A stretch of 64,000 bases of DNA from Macrostomum hystrix. Its lineage: Eukaryota > Animalia > Platyhelminthes. Position numbers and translations under genes: made by a program. Where the stretch lies: positions 5,022,001 through 5,086,000 of the forward strand of contig CATNEN010000024.1 in NCBI GenBank assembly GCA_950097015.1, given 5' to 3'. The number at the start of each line of letters is the position of its first letter. Position 1 is the stretch's first letter. Below, in pieces: positions 38,101 through 53,100 of the stretch. The notes below the pieces were generated by a model. That model had not been told where the DNA came from. It did no database searches and saw nothing but the letters and a program-made list of their open reading frames with translations.

Positions 38101-41100
38101 CCCTCTTTCATCGTCCTCCTTCCCCTCCTTCTCTCCCTCTTTCATCGTCCTCCTTCCCCTCCTTCTCTCCCTCTTTCATAGTCCTCCTTCCCTCTCCTTC
38201 TCTCCCTCTTTCATAGTCCTCCTTCCCCTCCTTCTCTCCCTCTTTCATCGTCCTCCTTCCCCTCCTTCTCTCCCTCTTTCATCGTCCTCCTTCCCCTCCT
38301 TCTCTCCCTCTTTCATCGTCCTCCTTCCCCTCCTTCTCTCCCTCTTTCATAGTCCTCCTTCCCCTCCTTCTCTCCCTCCCTCTCACCCTCCCTCTCAACC
38401 TCTTCCTTTCCCTTTTTTACTCCCTCCGTCTTTACATTCTCTCTCCTTATCTCTCTCTTAGTCCCTCTCCGTCTCTCCACCTTTCTCTTTTCTCAATCTT
38501 CCTCAAACATGGGAATAATCACACTGCGCTGCGAACAATTGGCAGGCAAAGCTGGTGGACAGAGCTGACCTCAAGGCATCCGCCACTGTCAGGCCCTACC
38601 TGGCTGACACTAATGAGTTTGTTGCTACCGGCATTCAGTCTGAAGCTAACGGCGTCCGAGTGAGTTCAAGCTTTATCAATCAAATTAGCATTTCGCTTGG
38701 ATGCGTGCAAAAATATCGGCGTAAAATAAGAAAATGCTGAACTTCAATTGATTCCAGATTTTTGTTAATCAATCAAGCGGAATCAAGGCGACCTTCTCTG
38801 CGGTAAGCTGTACTGAAGAAATTGATTTATTATGAAGCAAAAAACTGCCAAGAATACTCGTAAAACACAAGACAACAGAACTCACAGATGCTTAGCGATT
38901 TCTTTAAAGGGGCGTTAAAACAAAACCTTTTGCTTCTAACTCATTTTTGCTTCTAACTCACAAATTTCACAAAAACTCTTGTCATGCCTGTCACTCCAGT
39001 CATGCCTGTCACTCCAGTCATGCCTGTCACTCCAGTCATGCCTGTCACTCCAGTCATGCCTGTCCCTCCAGTCATGCCTGTCACTCCAGTCATGCCTGTC
39101 ACTCTAGTCATGCCTGTCACTCCAGTCATGCCTGTCACTCCAGTCATGTCTCTCACTCCAAAGATTGCGCTGTCTCCACGTGCAGTCGCCCCACCCCCCG
39201 CAGATCGTGTCGCAGGACCAGATCCGCAACTGGAGCAAGCTGGACAGCCAGGAACACACATCCGTGCTACTCAGCGCTGAGCACATTCAGGACTTCATCC
39301 GCAGCTTCTCAGCTGTCACCTTCGGCATCGCGGACAGCGGAGAGATCGTGGCCTCCTACGCTGAGCACTCGCTGCCCAGTGTCAGCGGGAAGGTGAGCAG
39401 CTTCTTGTGTGCTCACTGCATCCACTGCTGCTCATGTGCTCACTGCATCCACTGCTTCTCATGTGCTCACTGCATTCACTGCTTCTCATGTGCTCACTGC
39501 ATCCACTGCTGCTCATGTGATCACTGCATCCACTGCTGCTCATGTGATCACTGCATCCACTGCTGCTTATGTGCTCACTGCATCCACTGCTGCTCATGTG
39601 CTCATTGCATCAACGGCTTGAGTTGCACAAGACACACCAGTGCTCAGCTCGTGAGTTCTCACCGATCCAATCGCCTTCGGCCTCCGCCCGCAGCTGAAGC
39701 TCAGCAGCAACCTGACCAACGACACCGCGGAGCCGCAGGCTGGCGCCAGCATCGACGTCAGCGGCGAGCCGCACAGCTTTGTCTTCCTGACTGGCATCGA
39801 CGCAAGCGTCAACCTCATCCGCACCGGCCAGGACCTCCTGGAGTCCACCGTGGCCGACAAGCTCAAAGCTGGCGTCGAATTCAGTCGGTTCTCGTTCTGG
39901 GCTCAGTCATTCACCACAGAGACTGTCCTGCAGGTGGGTCCATTGCAATGCCTTTCCCCTGCAAGTCACTCTACTCAGTCTCAAATTGGAATCTGTTGGA
40001 CTTCTGACATTAAACTCACTTAGATCTTTATGACACTATGGCACTGTACGCGCAAATTTTAAACTAAAAATGACCCTCCCTTCTTAGATGACTGGACTGC
40101 AGCTCCTCACTGATGGATTCTATCACAAAGGTAAATTTTAGTTTTTATTCGCATAAGATGGCAATCGGCTTACAGCATAGATTACACTTTAATGTGTGGC
40201 CATGGACTGTGTGGTCAGGGACTGTGTGGTCAGGGACTGTGTGGTCAGGGACTGTGTGGTCAGGGACTGTGTGGTCATGGACTGTGTGATCAGGGACTGT
40301 GTGGTCAGGGACTGTGTGGTCAGGGACTGTGTGGTCAGGGACTGTGCAGTCAGGGACTGTGCAGTCAGGGACTGTGTGGTCAGGGACTGTGTGGTCATGG
40401 ACTGTGTGATCAGGGACTGTGTGGTCAGGGACTGTGTGGTCAGGGACTGTGTGGTCAGGGACTGTGTGGTCAGGGACTGTGTGGTCAGGGACTGTGTGGT
40501 CAGGGACTGTGTGGTCAGGGACTGTGTGGTCAGGGACTGTGTGGTCAGGGACTGTGCAGTCAGGGACTGTGTGGTCAGGGACTGTGTGGTCATGGACTGT
40601 GTGATCAGGGACTGTGTGGTCAGGGACTGTGTGGTCAGGGACTGTGTGGTCAGGGACTGTGTGGTCAGGGACTGTGTGGTCAGGGACTGTGTGGTCAGGG
40701 ACTGTGTGGTCAGGGACTGTGTGGTCAGGGACTGTGTAGTCAGGGACTATGTGTGGTCGGAGTGTCTCAGGGTCTATTTTTAACTTCTATTACCATTGCC
40801 AACAGAAGTCGAGGGACCAAGATTTGGGATCTCCATGGAGCGCATGTCTTCAGGTTCAGTTGCCGCTGCAGCCTTAGAAACTAGTTTAGGAGCTGGCGCA
40901 TCGGCAGCCAGGCCGGAGAAGTCTCAGACGAGGTCATACTTCCCTGAGACAATGCTGTGGACAATGGTTGAGACTGAGTAAGCCCTCCGACCGACTCGAA
41001 TTTGAGACCACAGTCTCTGAACTCCGTCACCCCACCATCCGCAGCGCCTCCGGACGAGCCAGCGAGGTCCTGCGACTGCCGGACACGATCACCAGCTGGG

Positions 41101-50100: not shown

Positions 50101-53100
50101 AAGACTCTGCTGAGTTGAGCATGAACTCAAATCCCGCCTGGACTCCACAGATCCAGCCCTCCTGCCTTCTCACCTGGCTCGCACAGTCACTGCGGCCGCC
50201 TCGGCCACTCGCTTCGAACGGAGGCTGAAGACCCCCAGACCTACGCCGTTGGCCTCGACGTTGACCTCGACGCTGTTGGCGGGCGCCGTCGACTGTCCGC
50301 TCGTTAGCGCCGTCAGCTCGAAGTCCTCCTGGTCAAGCGTCAGCGTGACGGTAGCTGTCAGACCGCTGGCGGAGTCATAGTTGAACAGCAGCAGCCGCAG
50401 CAGCAGTGACTCGCCGCGGATCATCGAGTGCGGCAGTGTCGGCTGCACGAAGAAGCTCTTGAAGGTGGTCACCTGGAATGGACGCTGCACAGTCTGGATG
50501 GCGCGCTTGCTCGAGACACCGAAGGCCGTAACGTCCCAGCTGGTGATCGTGTCCGGCAGTCGCAGGACCTCGCTGGCTCGTCCGGAGGCGCTGCGGATGG
50601 TGGGGTGACGGAGTTCAGAGACTGTGGTCTCAAATTCGAGTCGGTCGGAGGGCTTACTCAGTCTCAACCATTGTCCACAGCATTGTCTCAGGGAAGTATG
50701 ACCTCGTCTGAGACTTCTCCGGTTGCTTCGGGGGCGTTTCTCGGGTGTCAACAGCCGGTGGCGGTTGTGGTTGCGGCGCGGCTGCCAGCAGCAGTCCCAC
50801 GTTCTCTTCAAATAATGGAAAGTCTGGCTTCCACCTTGGACAGGACAGGCCATTGTCTGAAATAGTATTTTAGTTTCATTGTTTGAGTTTATAGTTTACT
50901 TTGAATCAGCACATGGACTACCAGGAGAAGAAGAACGGGAAATGTTTTTATAAGAAAAATATAAAAAATGCTTTTTTTACCGTTTCTGCACAGATTTTGT
51001 GACTGTGTATGATTGAATAAAGGCCTATTCTTTGTTATTTGTTTTCTGCCTCATAGCAGAAAATTCTTCCATGGTTCTTCTCTCCGTGACCCATCGCTTG
51101 CCTAAGCACTACCCCGTGCCATCGGTCAGTGGGACACTTTTCAGTGACATTCAGTGACTTTACCTTCGTTATAGAATCCATCGGTTAGTAGCTGCAGTCC
51201 GATGTGCTGAAAGGTGTGGTAGATTAAGGCTCAGGTTTGGCATTTAGCATTTTTGTATTGACTCATTGAAGGTAGTCAAGTAAGTGCTACCTGCAGTATG
51301 TTGCTGGTCGAGTAGGACTGCAGTCGGCAACTTCTGCCGAAGTCCTGATGCATGAAGCGTGGAAGATCGCCAGCTTTGAGCTTGTCGGCCACGGTGGACT
51401 CCAGGAGGTCCTGGCCGGTGCGGATGAGGTTGACGCTTGCGTCGATGCCAGTCAGGAAGACAAAGCTGTGCGGCTCGCCGCTGACGTCGATGCTGGCGCC
51501 AGCCTGCGGCTCCGCGGTGTCGTTGGTCAGGTTGCTGCTAAGCTTCAGCTGCGGGCGGAGGCCGGAGGCGATTGGATCGGTGAGAACTCACGATCTGAGC
51601 ACTGGTGTGTCTTGTGCAACTCAAGCAGTAGATGCAGTGAGCACATGAGCAGCAGTGGATGCAGTGAGCACATGAGCAGCAGTGGATGCAGTGAGCACAT
51701 GAGAAGCAGTGGATGCAGTGAGCACATGAGAAGCAGTGGATGCAGTGAGCACATGAGCAGCAGCGGATGCAGTGAGCACATGAGAAGCAGTGGATGCAGT
51801 GAGCACATGAGAAGCAGTGGATGCAGTGAGCACATGAGAAGCAGTGGATGCAGTGAGCACATGGGAAGCAGTGGATGCAGTGAGCACTTGAGAAGCAGCG
51901 GATGCAGTGAGCACATGAGAAGCAGCGGATGCAGTGAGCACATGAGAAGCAGTGGATGCAGTGAGCACATGGGAAGCAGTGGATGCAGTGAGCACATGAG
52001 CAGCAGCGGATGCAGTGAGCACATGAGAAGCAGTGGATGCAGTGAGCACATGAGAAGCAGTGGATGCAGTGAGCACATGAGAAGCAGTGGATGCAGTGAG
52101 CACATGGGAAGCAGTGGATGCAGTGAGCACTTGAGAAGCAGCGGATGCAGTGAGCACATGAGAAGCAGCGGATGCAGTGAGCACATGAGAAGCAGTGGAT
52201 GCAGTGAGCACATGGGAAGCAGTGGATGCAGTGAGCACTTGAGAAGCAGCGGATGCAGTGAGCACATGAGAAGCAGCGGATGCAGTGAGCACATGAGAAG
52301 CAGCGGATGCAGTGAGCACATGAGAAGCAGCGGATGCAGTGAGCACATGAGAAGCAGCGGATGCAGTGAGCACATGGGAAGCAGCGGATGCAGTGAGCAC
52401 ATGAGAAGCAGCGGATGCAGTGAGCACATGAGAAGCAGCGGATGCAGGGAGCACATGGGAAGCAGCGGATGCAGTGAGCACATGAGCAGCAGCGGATGCA
52501 GTGAGCACATGGGAAGCAGCGGATGCAGTGAGCACATGAGCAGCAGCGGATGCAGTGATCACATGAGAAGCAGCGGATGCAGTGAGCACATGAGCAGCAG
52601 CGGATGCAGTGAGCACATGGGAAGCAGCGGATGCAGTGAGCACATGAGCAGCAGCGGATGCAGTGATCACATGAGAAGCAGCGGATGCAGTGAGCACATG
52701 AGAAGCAGCGGATGCAGTGAGCACATGAGAAGCAGCGGATGCAGTGAGCACATGAGAAGCAGTGGATGCAGTGAGCACATGAGAAGCAGCGGATGCAGTG
52801 AGCACATGAGCAGCAGCGGATGCAGTGAGCACATGAGAAGCAGCGGATGCAGTGAGCACATGAGCAGCAGCGGATGCAGTGAGCACATGAGAAGCAGCGG
52901 ATGCAGTGAGCACATGAGAAGCAGCGGATGCAGTGAGCACATGAGAAGCAGTGGATGCAGTGAGCACATGAGAAGCAGCGGATGCAGTGAGCACATGAGC
53001 AGCAGCGGATGCAGTGAGCACATGAGAAGCAGCGGATGCAGTGAGCACATGGGAAGCAGCGGATGCAGTGAGCACATGAGCAGCAGCGGATGCAGTGAGC

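Follow-up and report, generated by a model that had tools for sequence, protein, structure and literature searches.

The 64,000-nt stretch of Macrostomum hystrix DNA analysed here (assembly GCA_950097015.1, contig CATNEN010000024.1, positions 5,022,001 to 5,086,000; hereafter the window, numbered from its first letter) holds two genes for thioester-containing proteins (TEPs), termed TEP-A and TEP-B, which lie on opposite strands with their stop codons ~1.9 kb apart. As modelled, both are complete A2M/TEP genes arranged tail to tail, not a gene accompanied by a fragment. The 16-exon models (Table 1) were obtained by combining tblastn with a protein of Macrostomum lignano, splice-site enumeration and RNA joints, and both remain open from a signal-peptide-like first exon through to the stop codon. 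Large parts of the two genes are nearly identical, introns included, while other parts, among them the putative bait region, are deeply diverged. Decay of TEP-B to a pseudogene was set aside as main explanation, all of its 16 exons being open and spliceable.

Two TEP genes in inverted orientation

Pfam searches of the exon-sized open reading frames (ORFs) of TEP-A matched, in order, MG2, MG3, A2M, TED_complement and A2M_recep. The domain order of the superfamily (MG domains, A2M/MG7, thioester domain, C-terminal MG8) is present, and both copies are colinear with the 1520-aa M. lignano TEP and carry an intact thioester motif, GCGEQ, in exon 13. Anaphylatoxin and C345C domains were sought in the exons of TEP-A and TEP-B, where Pfam returned no ANATO or NTR match. 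The combination of signal-peptide-like hydrophobic N termini, absence of these two domains and a Cys-rich C terminus is that of iTEPs, for which a Cys-rich C-terminal tail is a criterion (PMC5489563). A glycosylphosphatidylinositol (GPI)-anchor signal, which strict CD109 orthology would demand, was not apparent, as inspection of the last 30 residues (...CPGCPIP) revealed no hydrophobic stretch. With a Cys-rich C terminus that lacks a hydrophobic tail, the two proteins thus fit the iTEP type better than a GPI-anchored CD109. On domain content and motifs, TEP-A and TEP-B belong to the alpha-2-macroglobulin superfamily, as iTEP/CD109-like and probably secreted proteins.

The closest solved structures are those of CD109, A2ML1 and A2M. 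Human CD109 and A2ML1 (PDB codes 8S3O, 9FX2 and 7Q1Y; PMC12927315) share with TEP-A and TEP-B the domain order, a bait located before the YFPETW strand and a GCGEQ-type thioester, although the identity expected from related matches is ~30-35% and the flatworm proteins have a Cys-rich tail and no GPI signal. CD109 and A2ML1 are monomeric alpha-macroglobulin protease inhibitors, in which bait cleavage leads to a conformational change and covalent capture (PMC12927315). By analogy with CD109, A2ML1 and A2M, the baits of TEP-A and TEP-B would likewise be cleaved by proteases (PMC12927315).

The position of the bait is indicated from both sides. A2M_BRD, the Pfam profile of the bait-region domain, gave a weak tail match that ends at residue 41 of exon 9, just ahead of the variable stretch, and the conserved strand that follows this stretch aligns with ...RQYFPETWLW of A2ML1 and ...RKYFPETWIW of A2M. 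Bounded by the A2M_BRD tail and the YFPETW strand, the variable stretch therefore occupies the bait-region position of the family. This agrees with a sequence-only reading of the same DNA, which had taken the segment just ahead of R.YFPETW.W as the bait; in solved relatives, too, the bait directly precedes the ...R.YFPETxLW strand (PMC12927315). The two bait peptides which that reading located at 40806-40912 (+) and 50856-50723 (-) are indeed encoded; they differ in length, and their unique parts, for which a MAFFT alignment was also made, score no higher than shuffled sequence (nucleotide z=0.6, amino-acid z=1.3). The acceptors of exon 11, ...ccaacag before 40806 in TEP-A and ...tatttcag before 50856 in TEP-B, both present a good AG and an identical intron phase. 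Neither bait exon matched a Pfam family, and the ORF of the TEP-B bait exon had no match in a collection of 5.8 billion proteins. Alternative bait cassettes within either gene, of the Tep2 kind, were also considered and rejected, as blastn between the window halves gave, for this segment, colinear matches only.

Table 1. Coordinates and properties of TEP-A, TEP-B and the segments into which their comparison divides them (dS, synonymous substitutions per synonymous site)
Feature	Position	Strand	Content and evidence	Protein identity, A vs B	dS
TEP-A gene	32152..45273	+	16 exons, open frame 1502 aa; colinear tblastn with M. lignano P0151, splice model
TEP-A exons e1-e8	e1 32152-32273, e2 33854-34031, e3 34770-34997, e4 35155-35689, e5 35791-35903, e6 37686-37889, e7 38546-38659, e8 39186-39392	+	predicted
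TEP-A exons e9-e16	e9 39694-39933, e10 40088-40130, e11 40806-40977, e12 41045-41461, e13 41569-42623, e14 42726-43408, e15 43477-43579, e16 45179-45273	+	exons and introns confirmed by spliced RNA contigs in X2, X5, X9
TEP-B gene	47170..58059	-	16 exons, open frame 1509 aa; colinear tblastn with P0151; Pfam MG2, MG3 on B exons
TEP-B exons e1-e8	e1 58059-57956, e2 57710-57530, e3 56929-56702, e4 56313-55782, e5 55651-55539, e6 55176-54973, e7 54702-54589, e8 54135-53929	-	predicted
TEP-B exons e9-e16	e9 51548-51291, e10 51206-51164, e11 50856-50658, e12 50590-50174, e13 50066-49012, e14 48909-48227, e15 48158-48056, e16 47258-47170	-	e9 predicted; e10-e11 joined by GT..AG intron in X2 RNA record 7; X1 DNA contig continuous 48030-51397
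Island 1	A residues 1-135		signal peptide, MG1	53%	0.78
Tract T1	A residues 136-283		MG2, early MG3	98% (3 differences in 148 aligned residues)	0.009
Island 2	A residues 284-500		late MG3 to MG5	56%	1.09
Tract T2	A residues 501-629		late MG5, MG6a	98%	0.011
Island 3	A residues 630-718		bait	51% on forced alignment	1.29
Tract T3	A residues 719-1499		MG6b, MG7, CUB, TED, MG8	100%	0.002
T1, arm A	34875..35476	+	partner in B ~56824-55992
T2, arm A	38981..39874	+	end of intron 7, e8, intron 8 with 27-bp array, most of e9; partner in B 51368-54340; blastn 96-97% identity
T3, arm A	40913..43596	+	MG6b through MG7, CUB, TED (GCGEQ), MG8, to e15 donor
T3, arm B	48039..50722	-	3 mismatches vs arm A in 2,684 nt, introns included
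Bait island, TEP-A	39875..40912	+	end of e9, intron 9, micro-exon e10, intron 10 with 15-bp minisatellite, start of e11; blastn: no match between flanking tracts
Bait island, TEP-B	50723..51367	-	blastn, alignments and shuffle tests as for TEP-A island
TEP-A-specific part of bait exon e11	40806..40912	+	107 nt, 36 aa EVEGPRF...ASAAR; in main RNA contigs of X2, X5
TEP-B-specific part of bait exon e11	50723..50856	-	134 nt, 45 aa DNGLSCPRW...TPPKQ; in X2 record 7 spliced to e10, and in X1 DNA contig
19-bp minisatellite, intron 15 of TEP-A	43597..45139	+	81 copies, 1.5 kb; bounds T3
19-bp minisatellite, intron 15 of TEP-B	47285..48038	-	40 copies, 0.75 kb
Unique palindrome centre	45274..47169		holds both 3' ends

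Near-identical tracts and diverged islands

Comparison of the two genes divides them into three tracts of near identity and three islands (Table 1), with DNA identity per exon ranging from 65% (e7) to 100% (e12, e14 and e15) and reaching 99.5% in e8. Within the largest tract, T3, the sequence-only reading had described the genes as base-for-base identical from CCGGAGAAG (40913/50722) onwards, a description that is almost, though not exactly, correct. The two arms are in register from this point, with three mismatches in the 2,684 nt that precede the 19-bp minisatellite. Two of them, at A 41507 and 41516, fall in intron 12 and are the only differing bases in introns 11-14; the third is a synonymous C/A difference at 41851/49784. 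Recent homogenisation of the 3' half, as previously proposed, is upheld, because the introns are homogenised too while other parts of both genes have dS of ~1. On the far side of the array, a 159-nt stretch made up of the final 76 nt of intron 15 and the greater part of exon 16 is 92% identical (~96% for exon 16 alone), after which similarity vanishes, none being found between the arms past 45261/47176.

Divergence at the bait, which had been placed at the bait exon, covers this exon but starts earlier, at 39875 in TEP-A and 51367 in TEP-B, inside exon 9 and immediately behind ...ADKLKAG (39874/51368). Significant similarity (z=5.3) persists over the following 20 residues of TEP-A and 26 of TEP-B, the 43-nt micro-exon e10 is ~85% identical between the copies, and introns 9 and 10 are unalignable. 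The M. lignano ortholog and a more distant Macrostomum paralog have a layout like that of the TEP-A/TEP-B bait island and become alignable again at PEKSQ / KTQVRKFFPETM. Nonsynonymous divergence (dN) in the bait island is 0.41, alongside a dS of 1.29. The bait, taken earlier for the only part to escape homogenisation, has company, as the mosaic comprises three converted tracts and three old islands. Near-identical tracts that include introns and end in sharp edges against deeply diverged homologous flanks are the pattern of non-allelic conversion, and their position beside saturated islands thus points to repeated conversion between old paralogs and not to a young duplication.

Minisatellites with units of 15-61 bp occupy many introns of both genes (for example 32375-33731 and 40193-40753), and the window outside the TEP genes is likewise rich in tandem arrays. 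The 27-bp array extends over 0.2 kb in TEP-A (39408-39618) versus 2.3 kb in TEP-B (51623-53921). In intron 3 of TEP-B (56428-56725, minus strand) a perfect 61-bp tandem repeat (4.9 copies) takes in the final ~24 nt of exon 3 and the GTGAGT donor that follows, and so multiplies both. This places five identical donors in series, of which those other than the first would insert multiples of 61 nt; the repeat either expanded very recently or is a product of the assembly.

Transcripts and origin of the two copies

Four public runs (X1, X2, X5 and X9) were compared, as contigs only, with positions 48030-51622, a segment of 3,593 letters free of long arrays. X1 has the character of DNA: one contig runs unbroken from the shared half, over 50722, into the TEP-B bait and intron as far as 51397, and other contigs contain TEP-A sequence at the 39874 edge. 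Contig depth in this run is ~185 for the shared part and ~90 for a TEP-A-only contig, about twofold, which is a weak hint on copy number. X2, X5 and X9 have the character of RNA: GT..AG joints mark introns 11-14, and a further splice links 48056 to the last exon. As the donor at 48056 (the B counterpart of A 43579) is spliced to the last exon at 45179/47258, which lies past the 19-bp minisatellite, the RNA splices over the array and the minisatellite is intronic. Protein read-through into the minisatellite is excluded by the same splice (from 48056 to 45179 and 47258).

In X2 and X5, the main RNA contigs (depths 17 and 20, respectively) depart from TEP-B at 50722, carry 209 letters and rejoin it at 51368. 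These letters correspond to 59+43+107 nt of TEP-A, which is thus the main transcript in X2 and X5. A single intron between exon 9 and the bait exon of TEP-A was rejected, since no GT..AG pair yields the 209 letters with an open frame; inclusion of the 43-nt micro-exon (59+43+107) solves this. In X2, record 7 (168 nt, depth 3) carries the TEP-B bait segment 50729-50856 spliced to the B micro-exon at 51164. The presence of both transcripts is therefore borne out to the extent that each bait exon was recovered from spliced RNA, with TEP-B represented by this one contig. The evidence is thin, but on it TEP-B is transcribed and correctly spliced at intron 10, at a lower level than TEP-A. At 49784, the sole exonic difference between the T3 arms, TEP-B in the window has T, but the X1, X2 and X5 contigs have G, the letter of TEP-A. 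The RNA contigs are A-type, and the X1 DNA contig may reflect a popped bubble or arms that are identical there in the X1 sample.

A HMMER search of 1.8 billion representatives identified a M. lignano protein (72% identity) as the sole close relative, and its cluster includes PAA48905.1 (P0151; 1520 aa), named 'CD109 antigen'. The P0151 region search of protein collections returned just M. lignano and distant TEPs, with no same-species full-length protein or B-type transcript. Nor did this search or that with the TEP-B bait exon yield a second species in which both copies are present. PAA48905.1 is the positional ortholog of TEP-A, with beta-TrCP upstream, the same exon order and 71% identity in the effector half. 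In contrast to the M. hystrix locus, it is a single gene lacking an inverted partner, and its bait differs from those of both TEP-A and TEP-B. No inverted TEP copy was found in the 6.3 kb downstream covered by the contig at the syntenic M. lignano locus, nor within 10 kb of the second M. lignano TEP locus. A tree of island columns that included the M. lignano ortholog paired TEP-A with TEP-B as sisters (support 98/96), which, together with the lack of an inverted partner at two M. lignano loci, indicates that TEP-B is a lineage-specific inverted duplicate. The island branch is 0.59 for TEP-B and 0.24 for TEP-A, and on these lengths TEP-B has evolved faster (~2.5-fold). Identity to M. lignano is 62-81% in the converted tracts and 46-56% in the islands.

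Other genes were recognised around the pair. A beta-TrCP-type F-box/WD40 gene (Beta-TrCP_D, F-box, WD40) at 20099-24036 on the minus strand, which encloses a 37-bp minisatellite (20578-21685), corresponds by synteny to the upstream neighbour of the TEP ortholog in M. lignano. Two long single ORFs lie at 1614-3089 (-) and 27735-29279 (+), one with Cyclin_N and Cyclin_C and the other with Galactosyl_T; the Galactosyl_T ORF is located between the beta-TrCP-type gene and TEP-A. A fragment of a mariner/DDE-type transposase is found at 59980-60471 (+), just upstream of the first exon of TEP-B. At the palindrome centre, a 133-aa ORF (46095-46493, minus strand) includes a signal-peptide-like stretch (MSGFQRIMKPIVVSLLLLLLLKC...) and matches no Pfam family; it may be due to chance.

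Explanations of the mosaic

TEP-A and TEP-B probably form an intact inverted iTEP/CD109-like pair in which TEP-B is an old lineage-specific duplicate, three stretches have recently undergone homology-dependent conversion, and the islands, including the bait, have been left different. TEP-B would have arisen by an inverted duplication of TEP-A once the M. lignano lineage had separated, and this duplication would be old, with silent sites saturated in the signal peptide and MG1, from the middle of MG3 across the greater part of MG5, and in the bait. Arm-to-arm (non-allelic) conversion would recently have overwritten MG2 and early MG3, as well as late MG5 and MG6a, while a third conversion would account for the 2.7-kb tract that runs from the last bait residue to intron 15 and encodes MG6b, MG7, CUB, the thioester domain and MG8. 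Slowly evolving parts of the protein coincide with the converted stretches, and fast-evolving parts with the islands. Conversion needs homology and would stall at the borders of segments already diverged, such that the contrast would reinforce itself.

Homology-dependent conversion that stalls at diverged partners is the most economical mechanism. The sharp edges at the bait would exist because conversion stalls where homology is lost, with no bait-specific selection required, and the two non-bait islands because it likewise stalls at other fast-evolving segments. The T3 edge at PEKSQ is the point at which the M. lignano ortholog turns alignable, and this edge may therefore follow from lost homology alone. 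Conversion as the source of bait diversity, proposed by the sequence-only reading, does not hold: that diversity would be produced by duplication and divergence, and conversion would merely keep the remainder alike. The outcome, visible in the sequences themselves, is two proteins with identical effector halves that differ in bait, MG1 and MG3-MG5. From knowledge of the family, a protease cut in the exposed bait would trigger a conformational change that exposes the thioester. With bait cleavage as the trigger and two different baits, TEP-A and TEP-B would be expected to answer different proteases, and distinct protease triggers are plausible by analogy.

Several points weigh against this explanation or parts of it. 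The inverted arrangement across both 19-bp minisatellites comes from the assembly only, with no read set spanning it. Exons 1-8 of TEP-A and 1-9 of TEP-B were modelled from homology and splice signals, not RNA, and the exon 2 donors are weak. Expression of TEP-B was seen in X2 alone, as one contig (168 nt, depth 3), with none seen in X5. Secretion was read by eye from a hydrophobic stretch at the N terminus and its absence at the C terminus. The pairwise dN/dS of the bait, 0.32, refers to a doubtful, saturated and poorly alignable segment in a single genome, and speaks neither for nor against selection on the bait.

The edges of the bait island could also arise if selection protects two different baits by purging conversions that reach them, which would make the pair an adaptive device with one effector and two protease sensors. 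In its favour, both tract edges lie close to the bait, T2 ending 20-26 residues ahead of the conserved LLTDGFY micro-exon and T3 beginning at the first conserved post-bait residue, and frames are kept through the unalignable part despite length differences of 27 nt (e11) and 129 nt (whole island). In addition, TEPs of Drosophila and Daphnia are reported to show positive selection focused on their bait-like region (PMC2576239). However, the MG1 and MG3b-MG5 islands escaped conversion too, so the bait is not special, and the edges match loss of homology even between species. As the pairwise comparison also gives no dN>dS signal and TEP-B expression is weak, protection of the baits by selection appears rather unlikely.

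Extending selection to all three islands, MG1, MG3b-MG5 and the bait might constitute one co-adapted 'sensor' module, with selection keeping two sensors distinct while palindrome conversion keeps the shared effector (MG7-CUB-TED-MG8). In CD109 the MG3/MG4 face adjoins the bait, and a nanobody bound there blocks bait cleavage (PMC12927315). Little credence is given to this proposal; if true, recombination would maintain a division of an innate immune protein into a variable and a constant part.

The faster evolution of TEP-B could instead mean that this copy is little used and drifting toward loss, its effector half being perfect merely through fresh overwriting by TEP-A and its bait functionless. 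The island branch 2.5 times longer in TEP-B, its RNA depth of 3 against 17 for TEP-A in X2 with none in X5, the perfect 61-bp repeat (4.9 copies) that multiplies the exon 3 donor, and the absence of any protein resembling the TEP-B bait exon in the 5.8-billion-protein collection all accord with such decay. Yet the ~440 island codons of TEP-B contain no stop or frameshift despite a dS of ~1, and dN/dS in the islands is 0.3-0.5. Nothing has been lost of the signal peptide, the splice sites or the intron phases, and the transcript is correctly spliced at intron 10, making drift toward loss a decidedly improbable explanation. That an assembly artefact, through a fold-back or haplotype join, created the palindrome from alleles or from copies located elsewhere in the genome is highly improbable, for although near-perfect inverted repeats ending in tandem arrays are a typical site of assembly error and no independent data span the arrays, the two arms show three deeply diverged islands, five minisatellites of unequal length and separate 3' ends, both junctions occur in independent contigs, both forms occur within one RNA run and, as weak evidence, the shared part has about twice the X1 depth of the TEP-A-only contig (~185 versus ~90).

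Relation to known systems and significance

Homology-dependent conversion between old inverted paralogs has well-described counterparts. Inverted gene pairs and palindromes, such as the human Y palindromes and RHD/RHCE, are kept nearly identical by intrachromosomal conversion, with some patches escaping. Compared with these, conversion between TEP-A and TEP-B appears patchy inside a single gene body, with patches that track domain conservation. Within the TEP family, the clustered TEP1, TEP5 and TEP6 genes of Anopheles gambiae swap segments by gene conversion, giving rise to chimeric genes (Obbard et al. 2008, PMC2576239). As in that cluster, neighbouring TEP paralogs here have near-identical blocks beside deeply diverged ones. 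In Anopheles, however, the thioester domain is the converted, divergent region and exchange creates divergent alleles, whereas in the inverted TEP-A/TEP-B pair the thioester half is homogenised, and the bait and MG1/MG3-MG5 differ. Drosophila Tep2, in which a hypervariable exon is varied through alternative splicing (PMC5489563), resembles the present pair in joining several bait-like segments to one common thioester half. This is achieved in Tep2 by splicing within one gene, in contrast to the two separate genes of M. hystrix.

The TEP pair is a first and clean flatworm example of a known pattern, displaying an unusually legible mosaic, and does not constitute a new mechanism or a new kind of system. 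It joins to the evidence for sequence exchange among clustered TEP genes, so far from mosquito, a case from a flatworm. The locus is a compact natural example in which conversion and divergence would have divided an immune protein of the thioester type between homogenised segments and segments free to evolve, with conversion edges that coincide with the bait borders. If the protease sensitivities of the two baits differ, bait specificity could be studied on an otherwise identical effector background, in a flatworm amenable to laboratory culture.

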